The notes under the pieces: generated by a model
What the model saw: only the letters and a program-made list of their open reading frames with translations
What the model was told of the DNA's origin: nothing
The model's database searches: none
Part shown: piece by piece, positions 19,601 to 32,741 of the stretch
Layout: each line of letters opens with the position of its first letter
How positions within the stretch are numbered: the first letter of the stretch is position 1
From: Amoebophrya sp. A120
Lineage: Eukaryota > Protista > Dinoflagellata
DNA: 64,000 bases
Reading direction: 5' to 3'
Assembly: GCA_905178155.1 (NCBI GenBank)
Contig: CAJINV010000013.1
Coordinates: forward strand, 3,158,158 to 3,222,157
Program-made: the position numbers and the translations under genes

Positions 19601-22600
19601 TCGTCACACCCTTCGCGAAGCAGTCACTAAGGACAATCGGGCTCGCCTACAGGGACGTGTCCGCGGGCGAGAGTCCGGATTGGGACGCAGTTTTGAGTGC
19701 GGAAGACGCGTCCAGAATCACCGGACAAGCAGCGGAATGTCCGGTCTTTGAGACAGAGGTAAAGTCCCGGTAAATAACTTGTGTGTGCAGCGCATTTGTG
19801 CAAGTATGGTGATTTGCTGTGTCATGCGAAAAAAAAATGCAAACGCCACGAAATGAAAATACACATGATCAAGTAGATGTACAACATGGACAAACACGAG
19901 TCTGCATGTGTGTCCAGAACTTCTTTACAAATGACAAAACAGCTCACATTCCTTGGCCTGGTCGGTATCGAGGACCCACTTCGTCCCACCGTCGAGCCGG
20001 CGATCCGAAAGTGCAACTCCGCGGGCGTTGACGTCCGCATGGTAACGGGCGATAACATTGACACAGCGGTCGCGATCTCCAAGCAGTGCGGGATTCTGCG
20101 GCCGGGCATCGACATCGATGCCAGCTCCGGCGAAGTTTTGAACAACGCCGCGCTGTCCGGGCCGGAGTTTAGGAAGCGAGTGGTCGATAGCAACGGCAAG
20201 ATCAACCAGGAGGAGTTCGACAAAATCTGGCCGACCTTGAGGGTTCTCGCAAGGTCAAGTCCAACAGATAAATACTTGCTAGTGTCCGGTATCATCGAGT
20301 CTGATCTGTTCAAGAACCGGAAAATTTGCGAGGAGACAAAGATCTACCCGGACCGACAAGTGGTCGCCGTCACGGGCGATGGGACCAACGACGCGCCGGC
20401 ATTGAAGCGCGCGGACGTCGGGTTTGTGATGGGGTTAAGCGGGACGAGCGTCGCAAAAGACGCGGCGGACATTGTCATCACAAACGACGACTTTTCCTCC
20501 ATTGTCGAGGCGTGCAAATGGGGCCGGAACGTGTACGATTGCATCAGCAAATTCTTGCAATTCCAACTGACCGTGAACATCGTCGCGGTGACCCTGGCGT
20601 GCACGGGGTCGTTTGTGGACCGCGAATCACCCCTGCGAGCCGTGCAGATGTTGTGGGTGAACTTGATTATGGACTCGCTAGGGGCTTTGGCGTTGGCAAG
20701 TGAGCCACCAGTGCCAGAACTGCTGGAACGACCACCGTATGGGAGGAACAAACCGTTGCTCAGCTTTCAAATGAAGTACTTTGCTGATTTTTTGTGTGCT
20801 TTGCCTCCGTCATGCGATGCAGCAAGTACCAGAAAACGAAAACCTAAGGCTAGGCTATCTTTGTCATGCGGAAAGTGTATATAGTGAAAGTGAAGGTAGG
20901 AAAAGTGAAGCCATTGCTCGATGCCTGTGCGAAAATTTTGTCAGGTTCAACATGTTTGGGCAAGCCATTTACCAGCTCATTGTCCTCTTTGTACTTCTTT
21001 ACGCCGGTGCCGGAGCCGAGAAGGGCGACAAGAAGCCCGCGGAGGGACAAGCAAGGAGGTTTTTTATGCCATCTGAAGTCGACAACAGCGGAAGCGACTA
21101 CGACGTGTGGCACTGTGACGCCAGGGAATACAAGCAGGAGTACTACCAGAAGGCGTTTCCCACGCAGTCGGCGTCATCACCTCAAACAGACGCCCAAATC
21201 GACGCCGCCCTGGCACCCTATGGCGGGCTCTGCAGCAATTGCGGAGGCTTTCTCGACATTCCAAATGGTACTACATCAGGCTGCAGTTGTTGTAATTGAA
21301 GGTATGGTTTGTGTGATAAGGAGGCAACACGGGCCTAGCGAAGCGGCCCGGGTAGCCGACGCGGGAACACAAAGCGGATTTTTATAAGGAGATACTCCCT
21401 TCCCCACCGGTCGACGTTGTTACGGTCCCGGGAAGACCTAAAACTCGACCCAAAGTAATTCAAGTCAGCTCTCAAGTGAGTTTTTTTTTTTCAAGCGGCC
21501 TGCTGCCGCGCGTTTTTTCCAAAATGACAGTAAAAATGTATTCGCGAATGCGCCCTGCGGTGTGGTCTTCATCTCCTCCTCTCAAAAGTAGTTCCTCACG
21601 TCAAGTTTCAAGTGAAATTTTTTCAAGCGGCCTGCTGCCGCGCTTTTTTTTCAAAATCACAGTAAAAAATGTATTCGCGAATGCGCCCTGCGGCGTGGTC
21701 TTCATCTCCTCCTCTCAAAAGTAGGTCCTCACCTCCTTCAATTCGCCTGAGCGGTCAAAGCAAGTTTCAACTTGTCATACACTCAACATGCCCTGAGGCA
21801 CTGTAGTGGCCCGGCCACCTTTCCTTTCCTCTATTCCCTCTGAGAAAGCAAAGCTGTAGCGATCGCCTGTCTGACACGATCGCGCTTCTACTGAGCCTGC
21901 TGCTATTTCTTCACTTTGGCACCACGGTTGCACTCATCTACTAGTTTCAGATCTTCTTATCGCATGTGCGACAAGGGACAACGAAGAGCCCGAGCCCGAA
22001 AGGTGCCCCGTGGAGGGGCGGCCGTGGTAGGCCTCGCACAGGCCTATGTCCTGGCGCGGCCATCAATCAGGCTTCATTCCCAACATGACGGCGCGCTGAG
22101 CGTCAGTGCGACTGCAAGTACAAACAACCCAACGCACTCGCACCCCAGCGTGAGGAATTCGTCGGCCCGCCGCTGGGGTCAGTTCTTGGACCTGTGTTTT
22201 TTTTCCAACATTGTGTTGATGCTCCTGGGGGCGACGGAACAGAATAGGGCTGTCCTTACTCATGTGGTGTCCTCCCTGAATTTTGTAGACGATTTCACCT
22301 TAGCGGCACTGCAGCTCTCGGGCATAGCGACAGGGCCCGCGTCTACTCACCTGCAGCAAGTTGAAGCTGTTGGAAATAGTGACGGCGTTACTTCGTCCGG
22401 GGCTTCTGCCATGTGAATTTTTGCAAGGGGTTTGCTTTTTCTCCCGGCTCTACAAACTACAAGTTTTTCTAGGCCCGGCCTTCACAAAATATCAACTACT
22501 TACATTTGATAGCTTCAAGTGCACTGGCTTGGCTCTACGCCCGCCGTTGGCCGTCCTATGTCTAGGGTCCCTCACTCTGTGCTGCGGCATGAGTGAGCGT

Positions 22601-25600
22601 ATCAACATAGGGTGGGCGATTTTTCCGCTACACAACGCATATTAGTTCGGGCGCGCGTCGGGCCTGTGCCGGTGCCCGTCCAATAGTTGGCGCCACTATT
22701 TCAAGTGAGGACGAAGACACTGCGTCTATCGGTTGTGATGGGTGGCAGTATTAGTGTGTAGACCTTGTGGGACTGACGCCCAAGCTCTTAACCGTTGCAG
22801 TGTGCATCAGGCTGCAGTTGTTGTAATGACACATCTACCCTGGTAGAACCTTTTCGTGGAGTGACTGGAGGGAGTTTCCCCCCGTCCGTTTTTGTATATG
22901 GGCTGGCAGATCCCTAGAAGCTAATGCCTGGAGTTGTTGGTCTTCCACCCCTCTGAGTGGGGTCGGGGAAGGAGCCAACGCGGACGTAGTCCGCAGGTTT
23001 CGCTGGATAGTTTGCTTTGTGATGGATTCACATCGTTCTCGCGTTCTAATGAATGGTAGCTCATGTGCTCAGAGTGCACCGCAGTGCCATTCCGCCACTG
23101 AGGGCGCTTCCCAGCGGGGAAAGGTGATTTAGGAGGATTGCGTTCTAATGAATGGTAGCTCATGTGCTCAGAGTGCACCGCAGTGCCATTCCGCCACTGA
23201 AGGCGTTTCCCAGCGGGGAAGGGTGATTTAGGACGTTTTCGCTTTAATGGATGGTAGCTCATGTGCTCAGAGTGCACCGCAGTGCCATTCCGCCACTGAG
23301 GGCGCTTCCCAGCGGGGAAGATGGGTGTCAGGATGGTTTTGCGGTTTTTGCAACTAGTAAGTGGATCAGGAGGTGGATGTACTAAGATGCCTACTCATGG
23401 ATATTTCTGTTTTTCGAGCCCGTGGAGATATGGGTTGTTCTCTGTTTTCGCTCCTCATTAGGGCAGGATGTTTCATTCCGAGCTCTGGCCCTCAAGCTCG
23501 GGGTCCTAGATGGGCTGGCTGGAGTTTGTTTTTGTTCGCGCTTCTAGGGAATATGCGGCAGTGCTGGAGAGCATTATGGTGCTGCTCAGGGTGCAAGGCG
23601 GCTTTTGCTCGCCCTTCGATATGTGGCGGGTTTTTCAACTTACTTACTACCTACTACTCCGAGTAAGGGCAGGAGGCTCCGAAGCCTCGTTTGGGAAGCC
23701 CTGTCGGGGACAGATACCTCGCTGTGCTGGTTTTTAGCTTGAGAGCAGCTACTCCCCTGCCGGGTCGCGTCTCTACTCCTTTTTACACCAGAGCGGCTTC
23801 GCTTCGTCCTCGGTCTCAATGGGTCAGTAGTATAGTGCTGCGCGGGGTTGTCAGCGAGTGTACAAAACCTCCAGCCGGGAGCGCATGGGTCGAGTGCTAG
23901 AGGCTTTGCACTTAGGGATACGAGGTGGCGGGGCTCGCCGCAGTTCTATGGGCGATTGTTTTTGCTAGAGTTGGCCCTGTTGACGGCGGTGAGGATACTT
24001 ACTTTGTTTCGGATGCGCGTATAGCTTGCATCCCGTTCTTGGGGGCGCGGAGTCAGTGTCTATTCTATCCTGTCTGTTGGCCGTTTCGATAGATTTTAGG
24101 CTGGGGCCTGGGTCATTTTACACATTGGAAGTTTTCCGCTCAGGGGCCTGTAGTGCTACCCTCTGCTTCGCTTTGTTGATACTGCGGTCTAGTGCATGCC
24201 GTTTCGCGGTGGAGCTTCCCGGTCCTGGGGCACTTCTGTTTTCGGAAGGTTGGCTAGATGCCTCACAGCGCTGGCACTTATCTCGGCGGCTGCCTTTTTC
24301 TTTTACTTTTTCGGATTGGCCTTACAGTCTCATCTGCACCACACCAGGGGAGCTCCGCTCTGTCCTCGGTCTCGCCTTGCTTTGGGAACAGGGGTCGTTT
24401 GGCACTGGCGGTACCCAATCCGTTACCCTTGCGAACTTGTTCCCTGGCTGGGGCTGGTGGTTTGGTGTCTCCTTCGTTCGCCCTCTGTTTTTGTCCATTC
24501 TCCCGCCGCTTGCCGCAATTCCGGCCCGCGGTCTTCTGCTAGTTTGCGCATCGCCATCAGTTTTCTCCGCCCGTGCCGGCGGGCTTTCCCGGGACGGGAA
24601 GTGAGTGGCGTTTTTCTCTTGGCATTGAAGGACTTTCTTTTTCGCAGTTTGGGAGTGGCTTTTGGGCTTGTGTTGTATGTCTTGCCACCTCGCTTGGGCC
24701 GGGTGCTATCTGTTCCCCGGAGGTATCAATCCTTTCTACGTTTTGCGGCTCGCCACGAGGGGACGGCGGTTCGGCGCTTTCATTGCAGTGCTCCTCTTGC
24801 GGGTTTTTGGTCTTAGAGTGTATCGCGTTTTGTGTTTATCTTGGTATCGATGGGCTCCCCCTCAGTGGTTTTCCGTGTCGGCTAGGGGCCGTGTCCGACT
24901 TTTGTGCCTTGCGGGCAGTTGTCTCATCAGGTCCAGGGCGCAGAGCCTTTCGCGCGGGTTTTTGGAGTTTATCAAGAGGACGCTACGTGGGAGTTGGGTG
25001 GATCCCTTCTGGGGAATTGCCTGTTGCTTGCTGCTGGAATGTGGGGGGTTCGAGTGCTTGCTGTTCCCCGGTGGTATCCTTTCTACATTTTGCGGCTCGC
25101 CACGAGAGGGTGGTGGGCCGGCGCTTTTGATGCAGTATATCTTGTGCGGGATTTTGGCCTTAGAGTCCATCGTGGTGCGTGTCTATCTTGGTGTCTATGC
25201 GTTTTCCCTCAGGGGTTTTTCCGTGTCGGCTAGCGGCCGTGTCCGGGTTTCCTCGACATTCCAAATGGTACTACATCAGGCTGCAGTTGTTGTAATTACG
25301 GATGCACCTCGGTGCATCATTTTCGCGTAAGTGACGGAAAGGACGAGACTCCTATGGAAAGGGCTAGCAGATCCCTGGTAAGCTAATGCAAGGCGGCACG
25401 ACTGGACCCGCAATTGAGGCGGGGGTCGTGCCAAGGTTGGTTTTTCTTTCGATTGGCTGGACCCAGTCTAGGTTGACTGGGGGTCGATGTAGGTTTGCCA
25501 CGGCAATGGCCTGAGTTGGCGGCGCGACGACTGGACCTGGTCCTGGTGAGGTGACTGGGGGTCGGGATCGCTCAGATTCTTCGGTGAAAAGGCCAGGCGG

Positions 25601-28600
25601 CCTGTCAGCTTCGTGGAGCAGGGCACTAGGGCTCAAGGACTTGGCATGGCTTGGGCGCGCAGTGACGCCGGTATTGCTATTTATTACCTAGGGCACGGCT
25701 AGGATGGAGCCAGGAGTAGCGTGGTATGGCAGTGCCCGCGCGCACGATATGGCTAGGAGGCAAGGAAGCGCAGGGCTTTTTTACTCTCTACGTAGAGTTG
25801 TTTGTGTCTTACCTCTCCACCCTCACTAGGTCGGACTCGGAAGCACTGTTGGTGCTGGCTAGGATGGGCTTATAACTCTCCCTCCGTGCGGGCTTTGGGT
25901 GCACAGACGGGGAAAGCGAGGAGTTCGCAGGAAAGCGAGAAGTGGGCTTGGCCCATTCTCTCAGCAGCATAAGTGGCGGATGTTGACAGGGGTTACGAAC
26001 GTACTGAAAGGAATGGCTCTGATGACTTGGCTGGCGGAGCGTTTTATCTCTGGCGTGGTGTGACGCCACACGGATTGGCATCGGCATAGGACAGGGCTCG
26101 CAAGGCAACGTAGGAAAAGACGAGACTCGAATAGCTTCGCCCGCTCGGTTTGACATCGCAAACTTGCGCTAGAAGGAGCAATTTTCACAGAGTTCACAGT
26201 CTGGGGCGGGGAAGCAGCGCACGGGGCAGCGCGACGGTACTTGGCATCAACTGCAAACAGCAGCTGATCTGGAAGCGATTGACACCGCGACCCGAGCGCA
26301 CGACGCGCGGGGCGGTAAATCATGCCTGGCAGGGGACACACCTCGGGCAGATTCCGCGTGAACATGCATGCGCGCCGCCACCTGCACCCGCTAGGGGGAC
26401 GGCGCATACTTGCATCAGGCCGAGCCCTCTTTTGAAAGAAGATAGAAGTCGAACGCCTCAGCTCCATGCCCGATCGCTCTAGTTACTTAGCAGGCGCTTG
26501 GATCTCCGCCCTAGGCTTGAAATATTGACTTGATTACGTTCTTAAATTGGCTGCGCTAGTGGCCCGCACTTGAATCATCGAGCCGTGGATCGTTTTACGC
26601 CGTAGATTGCCGGAGAGCGGAAAACAGCCGCGGTAGGCGCGTAGGCCGCTCAACATGATAAAAGTCTCACACATCGCATGCCCTCGGCCATGCGCATCCT
26701 ATTTCCAAACAGCGACCACCTATTTCCGTCTCGCCCATGCAGACATCACTCAGAGCGTTGGTTTTCAGCGCGCCTCTGTTGTCATCTTCATCCATTAGTT
26801 TAGATCTATGATCGCCGCCAACGCTTTTACTTTTCAGCCGGGCGATGGCTCGCAAATTTGCCGCCTAAAAGGCTGCCGATTTTTTTCTAATATTGTGGGG
26901 CCCACATTGTTCCGGCTTGTGGCCCCCCTTGTTTCTTTTCGTCGTGGCCCCGTGAGTCTGGGGCCCCAAGGGTTCTAGAGGTAGTCCGGGCAAGGGTTTT
27001 TTCGCCCGTAGTTTTCGTAGGTTTTGGAAATTGGGGCGCTGGGGATTTTTTTTAATTTTTTTGGCGAAGATTTCCCGCCCCGGTGTCTGCAGGGCCCGTG
27101 GCGCATCGGGGCCCGGGGTTTCCAAGGTTTGCGCCCCTGCGATCTTAGTTTTTGCCCCAGAGGAAAAGCAGCGCGTGCGTTTTCCATTTGTCTCGGGCCG
27201 CATATCAATGGCCCCGGCCCGCCCGGCCGAGGTTCATGAGGGGCGCAGAAGTTGGATTGGGGGGGGTCTAATTTGGGCTCTAATTTCGCGTCTAATTTGT
27301 TTCTAATTCCAGCATAGGGAATGCGGAAGGGTTTGCAATGAAAAAAATTAGCCGTGATTTAGCCAGGAATTTAGGCGCGAAGTTAGTCGCCTGCCTTAGC
27401 ATCGATTTAGGCAAGGAATTAGCCGGGGGCAAGAGGCGCCCCGCCCGGTCTGCTTCCGGCCAGGCGGCTGTTGTTGATCATTTCGCCGGGTGGCTTCCCG
27501 GTTTTTTGTGTGGGCGAATTGCCGCCCCCCCTAATCTTGCACATCGCGCCGGGCCTCCCCTCGGGGTCGCCTCCCTTCTCGGCCATTTTCTCTCTGGATG
27601 GGAAGAGCCCCAGGGCGCTAGGTATTTGGCCGCGAAGTTCTTGGCCCCGTTCGTTTTTGTTGTCCCGCCCCCCCTGATTTTTGCCCGGTGGCCTTCGGGT
27701 TGGGTGTTGTCTTTGCTGGCATTGCCGCCACTTTCTTTTTTTGTTTTCCTTCGCGACATTAGAAAAAATATAGCAAGTTTTAAGCCTTGGAGAATGCCCG
27801 GGGCCGGCTGCCTGATACTTTTTTCCTCCAGTAAGCTGTCTTTTTTTCCTGCTGCGCTTTTATTTTCTAGTTTCTTGAAGACATTGAGATACTTAGCCGC
27901 CACGCACACGATGTCGAAGGAGGATCATGGTTCGGGCGAGCGCGGCCGATTTGCGCCAATTCGCCGGGATGTCATTTACCACCGGCGCACGGGTGCGCAG
28001 AAGGAGCACAGGGAGCCGAACGCTAGGGGAGTTGCGGCGGAGTACATTTGGGCCGGGGATTCGAAGGCCGCCAGTGGCCACNNNNNNNNNNNNNNNNNNN
28101 NNNNNNNNNNNNNNNNNNNNNNNNNNNNNNNNNNNNNNNNNNNNNNNNNNNNNNNNNNNNNNNNNNNNNNNNNNNNNNNNNNNNNNNNNNNNNNNNNNNN
28201 NNNNNNNNNNNNNNNNNNNNNNNNNNNNNNNNNNNNNNNNNNNNNNNNNNNNNNNNNNNNNNNNNNNNNNNNNNNNNNNNNNNNNNNNNNNNNNNNNNNN
28301 NNNNNNNNNNNNNNNNNNNNNNNNNNNNNNNNNNNNNNNNNNNNNNNNNNNNNNNNNNNNNNNNNNNNNNNNNNNNNNNNNNNNNNNNNNNNNNNNNNNN
28401 NNNNNNNNNNNNNNNNNNNNNNNNNNNNNNNNNNNNNNNNNNNNNNNNNNNNNNNNNNNNNNNNNNNNNNNNNNNNNNNNNNNNNNNNTACTTTTTTCCT
28501 CCAGTAAGCTGTCTTTTTTTCCTGCTGCGCTTTTATTTTCTAGTTTCTTGAAGACATTGAGATACTTAGCCGCCACGCACACGATGTCGAAGGAGGATCA

Positions 28601-31600
28601 TGGTTCGGGCGAGCGCGGCCGATTTGCGCCAATTCGCCGGGATGTCATTTACCACCGGCGCACGGGTGCGCAGAAGGAGCACAGGGAGCCGAACGCTAGG
28701 GGAGTTGCGGCGGAGTACATTTGGGCCGGGGATTCGAAGGCCGCCAGTGGCCACATTGTGTCGTGGTTTTTCACCTCGCAGGAGCCGAAGCGCCAGAAGG
28801 AAAGCGAGCGCCATCGTGTTCGCCTGGCGACTGGGGGCTGGTGGCTGATTTCGTGGCATCGGGCGAAATTTTTTCTGGACGAAGTCGTGGGCATCTCGGA
28901 AGACTATACGAACGCCATCGACGTCGCATTTTCTGCGGTGCGGCCAGATGTCGCGCTGCTTCCGACGTCATCACTGCACTGGTCATAGATCTTGGCAGCC
29001 TTAGGGTCGACGTGTCCGATTGGTTTTTTTTTTAGAAGTCCTGCCGACAGGTCTCTTTGTGAAATAGTCATAATGTATATGAATGATAGAAGATTGTGAG
29101 CGGCTTTTTACCGGAGTAGCTGCCGCCGTATTTGTTCCGGCCGATTTCGAAGATGTTCGCCATGGTTATAGCCTGATGGGCCCCAGCCTGCTCCCGCGTT
29201 TGCTTCCTTCCCTGCGCAGTCTTGTTGGTTTGCAGATATCTTGGCAACTTGAAGATCTAAGCCTATGACTTTTGATGTGAAGACTCACATGCGGGGGGCC
29301 CTTGCCCCCCCCCGCGCCCCCCCCCGCCCTTTCGATGTGATGACATTGCGCCTCAATCTGTATGCCTGATTTTTATTTTTGAGATGAAGACTGACATGCG
29401 GGGGGCCCTCGCCCCCCCCCGCGCCCCCCCCGCCCTTTCGATATGATGATATTGCGCCCCGATCTGTATGAGTAGTTTTTAATTCTAAGACTATAACTTC
29501 AAGATCTAAAGTTATGACCATGCGGGGGGCCCTCGCCCCCCCCCGCCCTTTCGATGTGATGATATTGCGCCTCAATCTGTATGAATGATTTTTATTTTTA
29601 AGAGTCTGCGCCCCGATCTGTATGAGTAATTTTTAAGTCTAAGACTGTAACTTCAAGATCTAAATTTATGGCCATGCGGGGGGCCCTCGCCCCCCCCCCC
29701 GCGCCCCCCCCGCCCTTTCGATGTGATGACATTGCGCCTCAATCTGTATGAATGATTTTTATTTTGAAGATGAAGACTTACATGCGGGGGGCCCTCGCCC
29801 CCCCCCCCGCGCCCCCCCCGCCCGGTCGATATGAGGATATTGCGCCCCGATCTGTATGGGTAGTTTCTAGATCTAAGATTATAACTTCAAGATCTAAATT
29901 TATGACTGATGAGATGAAGACTCACATCTTGATGAAGGCGCGCCGATTCAATTATGAAGATTGAGACTATGACTCTGAGAAGATTATGACTTTACTTCTA
30001 AGATAGGATAAGATGACGACTTTGATGATTCCAAGATGAGATAAGAAATTGTGACTTTTGAGATGATTCGATTATGATTTGAGATTAAGACTTGAGATTC
30101 GAATCTTTTGAATGTGAGACTATGTTATGAAGATATCTGAATTTAAATAGTGAATTGAGCTCAAGTTGTGAATTGAACTCAAATGGTGAACTGAACCCAA
30201 ATGGTGGACCGAACTCAAAAGATGCACTGAACTCTTGAACTCTTGAACATTTTGAATTTCTCGCAAGTCTTGCAAAGATCTTGTAGATATGACTATCAAT
30301 ATGACAAGCATGGCAGTGCTCTAGTTCATGGACATTCATCTCGTGGCATCGACCGAATGGCGGAGGAGTCGCCCTTTTTGGCAGGACGCTATTGGGGTAC
30401 GGCTGGGGGGCGGCACTGTGCCGCCAGAAATGGATAGATTGGGCCGAGGATTTGGTTGACATCAGTATGGCTGAGGCCGAGCCGGTAGGTTTTTAGGAAT
30501 CTAAGTCTGGGGCATGGGACCCGGGGCCCCAGACCGATTGCGAGGTTGGCGCTGATGGAGGTAGAGGCTGCGCCCTTGCTAGCAATGTATGGAGGAAGCA
30601 CAAGGGGGAATTCATGGGGGGCTACGGTCTGCATCTCCGGGCATGGTTTGTTTTCCTAGCTTCGGCCAACCTTGTGCAGCGGCGTTTTTCTCTTCCTCAG
30701 GACACTGCCCGGCACAGGTCTTTCGGGGAATTTCTTACTTACCTACCTGCCTCATTTGGGGCAGGGGATGTTGGTGCACTTTTCGCAGGCGCCAGCGCAT
30801 AGCTTGTTGGCCGGTTTCACACGCTGGCGGGGGTTTTTCCACTATAGGTTTCGGCTCGAGGCTGGCTTGAATTCACAATGATTGCGCCCTGCACTGCAGG
30901 TGGCTGAGGTTGGGCTCCGGGTCTGATCTAGAGGTGGTTACCGTCCACCCACCCCCTTTCTTCTCGAGAGTTGTGTCGGATGGACAGTGCAACGAGCGTG
31001 GGGGTGGCGCTGCTCGTTCCTTCGGGCTGTGCAATAGGGGTTTCCCTTCACTCATATTAGCTTCATTTCCGTGTTGGGCATTCGGGCCCAACGCAAGTCG
31101 AAGGGGTGGCTTCTACCCGGGAATTTCATTCTTTGTTCAGGTGTCTCACGTAGGCAGAAGGTAAGTAGGATCAGTCTGGGTTTGACAGCCAGCCGGCCGG
31201 ACTGTAGGCTTGGTGCTCGCTGGATCAGTGCATGGAGGGAAGCTTCCGAGCTCTCCCCCGGACTCGGCATGGGTGTCGATGCTCAACATTGCAGGGTGGG
31301 GCCCATTTCACTGCAGGCGCGGGGCAGCTGTCTCGCTCAGCGAGTTAGTGTTAATCTCCTTGCGGATAGGGTTTTTCGCTGCCTCACTCCTTTTTACGGG
31401 CTGTAGCTACATAGGAAATTGCTCTCTTCGAGAAGCTTGTACGTTTGGGGCCACACGCTGGCCCCAGGGTGTGCCGACTACCCCAGCTCGGGGTAGCGGG
31501 GGGGATGCAGTTTACTACGGGATGGTCGGTTCGGTGCTGCCTGCGGTGCTACGCAGTTTTTGGCAGGTTTTGCCATGAGATGGCTGTGCGCTGGGCGGTC

Positions 31601-32741
31601 TGGTAGTCCCTGCTTTCGGCGGCGGCACTAAAAATGTGGCTTGGGCAATGGTTTCGGATTCTGGCACTAAGCCCAGGGCGCTTGGGCGGCTTTTTGGTTG
31701 GGCGCTGCGCCTACTAGCTTTTTTTCTCGACATTCCAAATGGTACTACATCAGGCTGCAGTTGTTGTAATTGAACTACAAAAATTTTCGATGCTGCTCTC
31801 GCTTGTTAGCTTCCTCTGTGTACGTGTGGACATCAACATGTGTAAAAGAAAAGCTTACCTTAGTTTGAACCAACTTTCCCCCCCCCAGGTCGCGGCCTGG
31901 ACTTCAAGGGTCCCCCGTGCCAACACTACACGATTATTTTCAACGCGTTCGTGATGATGCAGCTTTTCAACTGGATCAACTGCCGGAAGATTTACCACGA
32001 GTTCAACGTTTTCAGCGGTATCCAGGACAACAAAACCTTCATCGGGATTTGGCTGATCTGCTTCACGATCCAGTGCCTCCTCGTGGAGGGCGGCGCCATC
32101 GGCAAGTCCGGCATCGACCTCGCCTGCGACGCCCACAACCGGGCGTTCTCCGCAACGCACCTCTCGGGGTCCCAGTGGGTGCTCTGCCTCGTCTGCGGGG
32201 TCTTCTCCCTGGCCTGGCAGTGGGTTTTGATCTTGATCGCGCGGAAGTTCTTCCCAGATATGGAAAAGATCGACGTGTACGTATCCTGAGTAAAAACGTC
32301 CCCACCCCATAGTCAAGATGGGAAATCTGCTACATAAATCGCTAAGCTATGGCTGTCGCGCATGACAAATTTGTTCGGCTCGCAATGTAGTTGTGTTTAG
32401 CTAGTGCAGCAGCATAACAGAGTCAGTCTGTCAAGCTGAGTCGAGCATGACAAATCTCAAACCACCACTAGAAAACGCCTCTCATGGGTCTCCGCATGGG
32501 AAACATTTCAAGCATGCAGATTTGCATGATAGTTCTGGGATGGGGACGTTTTTACACAGGATAGCACGCACTAGCCGGGCACTGGGAAGACGGGGAGGAG
32601 GAGAAGGAGGGGGACGAGAAAAACGACGAAAAGCTGTTTGAGTCCCAGCATAACAAAATCCCCGCGAACAACTCCGATGCGAAGTACACCAAAGGCGTGC
32701 ACCCCAACACGCTCGCGACCGAGATGGAGTCGCCGGTGTAA
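16643..32741 (+). CDS. PMCA: Plasma-membrane-type Ca2+-transporting P2B ATPase (PMCA), 11 exons, with a ~10.6-kb expanded intron 21268-31888
   Basis: [64 protein letters not shown]. Inferred introns: introner 16961-17265, 17322-17486, 17856-18005, ~18091-18321, 18504-18651, introner 18743-19004, 19759-19942, 20776-20944, 21268-31888, introner 32282-32563. Stop at 32739-32741. Confidence 0.92.
16961..17265. mobile_element. Introner, 305 bp
   Basis: TIRs tattacagtgaaaaatgcccccacccc / ggggtggggggcacttttcactgtaata; TSD accca (16956-16960, 17266-17270); removal gives [11 protein letters not shown]. Confidence 0.92.
18743..19004. mobile_element. Introner, 262-bp family, copy 1 (inverted relative to copies 2 and 3)
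   Basis: TIR core aaaatgtctgggtctggaa; TSD ccgca (18738-18742, 19005-19009); removal gives [13 protein letters not shown]. Confidence 0.95.
21473..21724. repeat. Two-copy tandem repeat (~135-bp period)
   Basis: caagtga..ttttcaagcggcctgctgccgcg...ctcaaaagtag at ~21473-21591 and ~21609-21724. Confidence 0.85.
23041..23320. repeat. 99-bp tandem repeat, ~2.8 copies
   Basis: Unit gcgttctaatgaatggtagctcatgtgctcagagtgcaccgcagtgccattccgccactg... at 23041, 23140 and ~23239. Confidence 0.92.
24710..25245. repeat. Diverged ~190-bp direct repeat pair
   Basis: ctgttccccgg..ggtatc..tttctac.ttttgcggctcgccacgag...ttttccgtgtcggctag.ggccgtgtccg at ~24710-24897 and ~25061-25245. Confidence 0.8.
28082..28489. 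other. Assembly gap (N run) with overlapping flanks
   Basis: 28490-28754 repeats 27817-28081, typical of unmerged overlapping contig ends. Confidence 0.9.
29286..29910. repeat. Compound minisatellite with G/C homopolymer runs, 5 cores
   Basis: Recurrent catgcggggggccctcgcccccccc(gcgccccccc)gccctttcgatgtgatga.attgcgcc.c.atctgtatg with two alternating AT-rich spacers; decays into gatga/atgact low complexity to ~30300. Confidence 0.88.
32282..32563. mobile_element. Introner, 282 bp
   Basis: TIRs tatcctgagtaaaaacgtccccacccca / tgggatggggacgtttttacacaggata; TSD gtacg (32277-32281) vs gcacg (32564-32568), one mismatch; removal opens the acidic C-terminal tail of PMCA. Confidence 0.88.

Follow-up and report, generated by a model that had tools for sequence, protein, structure and literature searches.

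How did an intron of about 147 nt come to hold three large non-coding modules, each separated from the next by a copy of the same short sequence? The question is raised by a locus in the dinoflagellate Amoebophrya sp. A120, whose repeats have been reported to be mostly unclassified (PMC7789003). The locus lies in a 64,000-nt window (the whole stretch of DNA analysed; contig CAJINV010000013.1, positions 3,158,158 to 3,222,157), and the intron belongs to a gene for a P-type cation ATPase of the calcium-pump type. An initial annotation of the window attributed the three modules (A, B and C from left to right) to a sequence-specific integration system that adds cargo to one end of a polarised array, in a manner reminiscent of CRISPR acquisition. 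We report here that the array is a stack of ordinary, unclassified non-autonomous mobile elements and that no site-specific or CRISPR-like acquisition system is involved. The three modules are probably non-coding, minus-sense retroelements that were inserted by target-primed reverse transcription, of the LINE-type non-LTR or the Penelope-like kind, with the enzyme supplied in trans.

A repeat search of the window recovered the exon-end/intron-start sequence of the ATPase gene in the four copies described previously (at 21249, 22805, 25249/52 and 31723), which separate the three non-coding modules. The segments 21249-21300 and 31723-31774 are identical at 52 of 52 positions, 25249-25300 shows 92% identity, and 22805-22827 represents a 23-nt core. 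In the 115.5-Mb genome the 23-mer CATCAGGCTGCAGTTGTTGTAAT has four occurrences, every one of them at the array locus; its reversed control was found 0 times. When the positions of the native 52-mer are numbered t1 to t52, the locus reads t1-48, module A, t26-48, module B, t4-49, module C, and t1-52 followed by the native intron. The right end of every target copy is ...GTTGTTGTAAT(T), and the left ends vary. This shared right end and variable left end had been noted before, but the last 3-4 nt then ascribed to copy 1 (TGAA, 21297-21300) are assigned here to module A and not to the target, since only the rightmost copy can keep native bases past the nick, and since the A-type copy at locus L022 likewise reads TTGAA ahead of its terminus. 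The parts of the array are as follows, with module strands given for the proposed minus sense:

21249..21296, plus strand: target copy 1 (t1-t48), joined to the native exon; placed by repeat and genome counts and by nesting logic
21297..22804, minus strand: module A, the putative youngest insertion, with the precise end (TGAA)GGTATGGTTTGTGTG... and a flanking 23-nt duplication
22805..22827, plus strand: target copy 2 (t26-t48), the right-hand duplication of module A
22828..25251, minus strand: module B, with the precise end GACACATC, a hairpin at 22834-22847 and a flanking 45-nt duplication
25252..25297, plus strand: target copy 3 (t4-t49), the right-hand duplication of module B, which carries a copy of the 5' splice site
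25298..26112, minus strand: module C, proximal part, the putative oldest insertion, with the precise end (T)ACGGATGCACC... and a hairpin at 25301-25318
30322..31722, minus strand: module C, distal part, ending ...CCTACTAGC(TTTT), with 66-69% identity to the copies on C18 and C4 and collinear with the proximal part
31723..31774, plus strand: target copy 4, the native site, which runs into the original intron; predicted nick after 31770 (GTAAT^TGAACTAC)

The duplications in the window measure 48-51 nt for C, 45 nt for B and 23 nt for A; the left edge of C is ambiguous as there are four extra T at its far junction, and the B junction has one extra C. As deduced from these nested duplications, the order of insertion is C, B, A, each into the leftmost target copy. 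Two further elements were inserted later, X into C and Y into X. A duplicated block flanks its element on both sides and only the rightmost block stays joined to the native downstream sequence, and therefore other orders fail. C precedes B because the right-hand block of C is the native one, and B precedes A because the right-hand block of B has t4-t25, which were adjacent to the nick only before any insertion to the left of them. Two candidate orders, A first and C then A then B, were excluded since t4-t25 in the right block of B are not nick-adjacent in either. The order proposed in the initial annotation is thus forced by the duplications themselves. The nested X and Y are consistent with C as the oldest module; A and B carry no nested insertions. 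The position of the nick, after GTAAT, could have been identical in all three insertions. The site stays usable since the duplication retains TAAWT and about 50 nt of upstream context beside each new element, and the locus is in this respect a clean natural record, in which the long duplication keeps the insertion site and an ordered pile-up can be read from nested duplication lengths. The leftmost copy would be picked twice in succession with a chance probability of ~1/6, so that the polarity alone is not evidence for a directed mechanism; in view of this figure and of the cargo, which consists of ordinary dispersed repeats, the comparison with CRISPR acquisition goes too far.

Module B shows 93-95% identity to a non-coding element of 6,051 bp that is present in full on C1, C12 and C2. 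Relative to this element module B has an internal deletion of ~3.1 kb, and the last ~560 bp are missing. The full copies on C12 and C2 are 99.98% identical across the 6,051 bp and their flanks are unrelated, which indicates that the B family was mobile recently and in trans. Only low-complexity open frames are present in the full-length element. Three 99-bp tandem repeats in module B (23041-23337) are present also in all full copies. The first 815 nt of module C show 78% identity to the copies on C18 and C4, and its first 156-181 nt show 94-96% identity to others. In module A, which holds a 133-bp tandem duplication at 21486-21735, only the first ~150-260 nt recur, at about a dozen other loci, and the remainder is unique in the genome. 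Regardless of the flank, A-type copies start with G(G)TTATGG..., B-type copies with GACACATCTACCCTGGTAGA... and C-type copies with (T)ACGGATGCACCTCGGTGCATC.... The modules had been regarded as otherwise different from one another; in fact B and C have homologous termini, and C is a composite with two nested insertions. We propose that A, B and C define three related, previously unclassified non-autonomous repeat families, characterized by a precise end, a hairpin, a TAAWT target and 20-55-bp duplications.

Matches in the genome that begin at position 1 of the element number about 22 for the B type and about 20 for the C type; they stop at different points, and the element-end junction sequence is identical among copies. 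Copies of the B and C families at six other loci are flanked by duplications of 31-55 bp that are anchored at the precise end:

L010: 51 bp
L009: 34 bp
L044: 31 bp
L055: 41 bp
L045 and L043: ~45 bp and ~55 bp, respectively, with one or two mismatches

Together with the three in the window, nine of nine truncated copies carry duplications of 22-55 bp. Long duplications anchored at a fixed nick, as suggested from the window, are thus found at the same end elsewhere, and the genome-wide matches to the module ends also have a target preference in common. Among 27 copies of the three families the target motif is roughly TAAWT^ (T at -5 in 25/27, A or T at -4 in 27/27, T at -1 in 18/27). The long sequence-specific target that had been postulated is not supported: the 23-mer is unique to this locus, the other copies lie at unrelated sites, and their 27 flanks share TAAWT only. 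To the right of the nick the bases look alike in four reconstructed empty sites (TGAACT, TGAACT, TAACTC and TTAACT), a small sample. At L010 there is a 7-nt microhomology (GACACAT) between the target and the element end. The target of the B copy at this locus (C4:1589950-1591200) contains repeats of GCCATTTTGG, which we take to resemble the core of the dinoflagellate spliced leader and which could be relic leaders or a leader gene region.

The precise end bears a terminal hairpin in which B and C differ by two fully compensatory stem pair changes (G-C to C-G and C-G to T-A), and two hairpin variants have an A.C mismatch on the plus strand that reads as a G.U pair on the minus strand. Folding of the ~120-nt termini gave no thermodynamic excess on either strand (z from -0.6 to +0.3); the terminal hairpin alone is robust. 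The modules are T/G-rich on the plus strand, hence A/C-rich on the minus strand. A minus-strand sense had been suggested from this composition, and the truncation of the far end is as expected for minus-sense, target-primed insertion.

Copies are frequently arranged head-to-tail, in junctions where the far terminus (...GGAACG..CGAAA) adjoins the exact end of the next copy. Such junctions were found at 5/22 C-type termini, in the C1 B-type copy and at three A-type loci, and from this high genome-wide rate the boundary of a resident copy would seem to be a favoured place of insertion, perhaps on account of its upstream context, the resident hairpin or local chromatin. At one locus (L067/L068, C15:358037-361699) two far-end/exact-end junctions face each other as an inverted pair. 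At the centre of this inverted repeat (L067, 1772-1888) no tRNA was detected; a match to mir-1260b below threshold (40 bits, with a gathering score of 81) most likely reflects no more than the hairpin that this inverted repeat forms. The C1 B-type copy (L015/L036, C1:5535192-5541700) comprises a full 6.1-kb B element and, head-to-tail behind it, a derivative of 405 bp made of 215 nt of the start, 60 nt and 130 nt of the end. The layout of this copy is a perfect split direct repeat, A1-B1A2-B2.

The exact end, the random far-end truncation, the anchored duplications of variable length, the microhomology or extra bases at junctions and the internal deletions, all in non-coding families, argue for target-primed reverse transcription. 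As read from the junctions, the plus strand would be nicked right after TAAWT, here GTAAT^ at 21296, 22827, 25296/7 and 31770, and reverse transcription of the element RNA would be primed by the free 3'-OH, starting at the end of that RNA (its 3' end) which bears the hairpin. Copying would frequently halt early, giving far-end truncation, and the other strand would be cut 20-55 nt to the left, giving a long and variable duplication anchored at the nick. With the motif and its upstream context preserved, the nick might be re-used: by C first, by B in the left copy, and by A in the left copy of that. If this mechanism is true, minus-strand transcripts ending in ...GAUGUGUC or ...CAUCCGU(A) are expected.

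Several observations weigh against this mechanism. The three full-length B copies (on C1, C12 and C2) have no target duplication. Both termini are conserved among families with differing interiors, short derivatives with both ends exist, and far-end matches (41) are not rarer than exact-end matches (~24); the conserved ends and the match counts fit elements that require both ends at least as well as they fit retroposons. For three insertions to fall at one nucleotide, some local attraction beyond the preservation of the motif is required, which target-primed insertion by itself leaves unexplained. Direct signs of an RNA intermediate were not found either: the elements have no poly(A), and an Rfam scan of the window region and the full-length copies on both strands gave no ribozyme (no hammerhead) or other RNA family. 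The last point against it concerns a nearby enzyme: no RVT_1, Phage_integrase, Helitron_like_N or GIY-YIG match lies less than 5 kb from any terminus located by pattern or BLAST, and the full-length partner with a reverse transcriptase or nuclease that had been envisaged did not emerge within that distance.

Candidate enzymes exist in the genome at large, with at least 106 RVT_1 matches, 12 tyrosine-recombinase (Phage_integrase) matches, 7 Helitron Rep matches and 3 long open reading frames (ORFs) with GIY-YIG matches, the last being frames of 1,259-1,535 aa, none of them near a terminus. ORF scans of the A, B, C and X copies yielded no usable ORF, only low-complexity frames, and modules A, B and C encode no enzyme, as had been stated in the initial annotation. 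Among the flanking ORFs, the ten longest either are host genes (ABC transporter, GNAT-like, PPR) or have no match.

Among the other explanations, the one that survives best, unlikely as it is, takes the modules as Helitron- or Replitron-type DNA transposons in plus orientation that move by the rolling-circle (HUH/Rep) route. Replication and transfer would then start at the hairpin-bearing left end, just 3' of a short target, whereas the right end would be imprecise and the duplications a non-canonical by-product of integration. The precise left end, the subterminal hairpin and the orientation-specific insertion 3' of a short motif all fit such elements, as do the exact ends and missing duplications of the full-length copies, the common head-to-tail arrays and the conservation of both termini. 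Helitron Rep/helicase genes are present in the genome (open frames up to 2,028 aa), and Replitron-1 and some Chlamydomonas Helitrons give variable, target-including duplications and fuzzy right ends (PMC10288648). The typical error of rolling-circle transposition, however, is read-through with capture of flanking sequence; random truncation is atypical, and no transduced flank was seen. The termini (GACACATC... and ...CGAAAA, or their reverse complement) and the TAAWT^ flanks also fail the Helitron signature (5'-TC...CTRR-3', A^T), and the Rep genes are all distant from the termini. For this class it would be unprecedented that nine of nine truncated copies carry duplications of 22-55 bp, and the wobble pairs of the hairpin favour folding of the minus strand.

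A second possibility, decidedly unlikely in our judgement, is that the integration machinery, beyond a preference for TAAWT, homes to the boundary of a resident element, recognizing either the hairpin DNA or the 50-bp upstream context, and builds ordered arrays with the youngest member beside the intact target; the enzyme might then be other than a reverse transcriptase (HUH- or recombinase-linked) and make 20-55-bp staggered breaks. If true, boundary homing would add a new mode of integration, used by a large class of the unclassified repeats of this genome.

It is quite improbable that the modules are non-autonomous relatives of tyrosine-recombinase retrotransposons of the DIRS/PAT/Ngaro type, with full A...B units moving as circles without duplication and the truncated copies arising through an aberrant side pathway. 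The C1 layout, A1-body-B1A2-60 bp-B2, is indeed that of PAT, Ngaro and VIPER (PMC4157794). The junctions between a B end and an A start are perfect, and the full-length copies lack duplications. One of the 12 tyrosine-recombinase matches, compatible in its orientation, is located 7 kb away from the far end of a B-type copy, but such a lone coincidence has a chance expectation of ~8%, and the full copies on C12 and C2 lack A2 and B2. Recombinase integration gives no duplication, and so the explanation fails for the one-end-anchored truncated copies with their 22-55-bp duplications; a truncated cDNA of a plus-sense element would also retain the end opposite to the one kept.

Reverse transcriptases of retroelements can jump from one template to another, and a single complex event is therefore conceivable, with repeated template switching among three RNAs and the cleaved target in one integration or break repair. 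We consider such an event very improbable. It would account for three families at exactly one nucleotide, which is very unlikely for independent random hits, and for target copies that are identical to each other. It would also require the same DNA end to be re-copied three times, and the nested duplication lengths exactly match three sequential insertions. In addition, C had time to acquire X, and X to acquire Y, while A and B are free of nested insertions.

Assembly was assessed by comparing independent contigs from public runs with 21000-26900, and the short-read contigs give partial support to the array as assembled. A contig of 1,432 nt runs from 21426 to 22857 and takes in module A, copy 2 and 30 nt at the start of B, and a contig from a different study joins the end of module C to the target copy; both agree with the array, but the copy 1/A and B/copy 3/C junctions are unbridged among the contigs listed. 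The breaks fall at the 52-mer, as expected for de Bruijn assemblies. An assembly artefact, in which alternative alleles or repeat copies were joined at the common 52-mer, is extremely improbable: the assembly does consist of Illumina scaffolds joined on a Nanopore backbone (PMC7789003), and the region does include a false gap with a 266-nt overlap duplicate besides the two unbridged junctions, but the 1,432-nt contig crosses from A to B at single-copy depth (38.8 against 42.7 on the exon contig), the C-end/target junction recurs in the other study, the copy lengths differ as nested duplications predict and not as joins at a common repeat would, and module A is unique in the genome.

Module C had been taken as one module of ~6 kb, but its size is ~5.75 kb after correction of the gap, not 6.4 kb as assembled, and the C-type element proper accounts for only ~2.2 kb; the rest, an interruption at 26113-30321, is due to two nested elements:

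26120..30299, strand not assigned: element X, nested in module C, with 99-100% identity to C1:6114885-6117403; contains Y and the gap artefact
26835..27815, 981 bp: element Y, nested in X, with terminal inverted repeats and a 7-bp duplication (TACTTTT); absent from the C1 copy of X

Element Y has short terminal inverted repeats (CAGCCGG...CCGGCTG) and many copies across the genome with 87-96% identity, and the C1 copy of X represents its empty site. Element X is bounded by exact ends, ACGAGACTCG...GACTATCAA, with no duplication visible. Within it are a conserved ORF of ~131 aa (28584-28985) with no Pfam match, and C-rich tandem repeats of 106-126 nt (29290-29910). On C9 (C9:1950215-1953420), X-like repeats are located less than 300 bp downstream of a reverse-transcriptase ORF on the opposite strand, and on account of this proximity X may be the tail of an autonomous retroelement. 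The gap (28082-28488) is bordered by a perfect 266-nt duplicate (27816-28081 = 28489-28754). In the 99-100% identical C1 copy the 266 nt are present once and the sequence is uninterrupted, and thus the gap consists of two overlapping scaffold ends, with 673 positions (28082-28754) to collapse. It raises no frame question since nothing is coding there.

The host gene has kept its reading frame throughout, and its relevant parts are:

20402..21268, plus strand: upstream exons of the P-type cation ATPase (Pfam Cation_ATPase_C, positions 2-46, E 5e-14), with ...CCAAATG as the final bases of the last exon (to 21268)
21269..31888, plus strand: host intron (GT..AG), 10,620 nt as assembled, 146-147 nt without the array

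The downstream exon, GTCGCGGC... (from 31889), continues in frame and matches Cation_ATPase_C positions 80-172 (E 5.5e-14). The intron has thus been enlarged from ~147 nt to ~10 kb (~70-fold) and its 5' splice site has been triplicated. Target copies 3 and 4 each include the 20 exon bases plus the GT donor (at 25272 and 31743), so that the 10.6-kb intron has three identical 5' splice sites. Of the raw RNA-seq reads with the same species label, none was placed on 21000-26900, ATPase exon included.

Comparison with known systems shows which features of the array are familiar. Elements of the R2, R9, NeSL-Utopia and CRE-SLACS groups and Dualen resemble the modules in their precise 3' and variable 5' junctions, duplications of between 0 and tens or hundreds of bp, stacking at one site and lack of a need for poly(A). 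The duplication of SLACS is 49 bp. Long duplications are known from R9 (126 bp) and, longer still, from Dualen (PMC9977147), and in Utopia, for which tandem insertions are described, the 3' boundary is precise, the 5' boundary varies and the duplications measure 0-20 bp (PMC4640811). Insertion in those families, however, is directed to a single long conserved site (rDNA, snRNA or spliced-leader genes, telomeres), whereas the modules are dispersed and share only a 5-nt motif. LINE/SINE pairs with a common structured 3' tail, and L1/Alu re-insertion at sites that earlier insertions regenerated, are paralleled by the modules in mobilization in trans via a conserved 3' end, in an A/T-rich target and in clustering through the preservation or creation of a target by an earlier insertion, although the duplications found here are 2-5 times longer than those of L1, there is no A-tail, and different families have the far (5') terminus in common as well. 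The modules share with Replitron-1 and the non-canonical Helitrons of Chlamydomonas (PMC10288648) an exact end 3' of a short target, a fixed orientation, imprecision at the opposite end, target-including duplications of variable length, and a terminal hairpin. Those elements carry extra parental flank, in place of truncations, at the fuzzy end and short direct terminal repeats, and they encode or need Rep; none of these features was seen in the modules.

Penelope-like elements differ from the modules in that no reverse transcriptase/GIY-YIG partner is tied to the termini here, the target is TAAWT and not a microsatellite, and the modules are up to 6 kb long, wholly non-coding and without an identified 'tail' of 30-40 bp. 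In Penelope-like elements the length of the duplication varies through the spacing of the two cleavages, and copies may be truncated at the 5' end, arranged as partial tandems or as inverted neighbours, or, where non-autonomous, inserted head-to-tail in multiple copies (PMC8557442). The Penelope-like Chlamys and MRC1 elements of Chlamydomonas (PMC8557442) are like the modules in their 5' truncation, variable duplications, tandem and inverted copies and lack of poly(A). The absence of a hammerhead from the modules is compatible with Naiad and most Chlamys, and the non-autonomous Penelope-like families are alike among themselves at the 3' end (PMC8557442), as the modules are.

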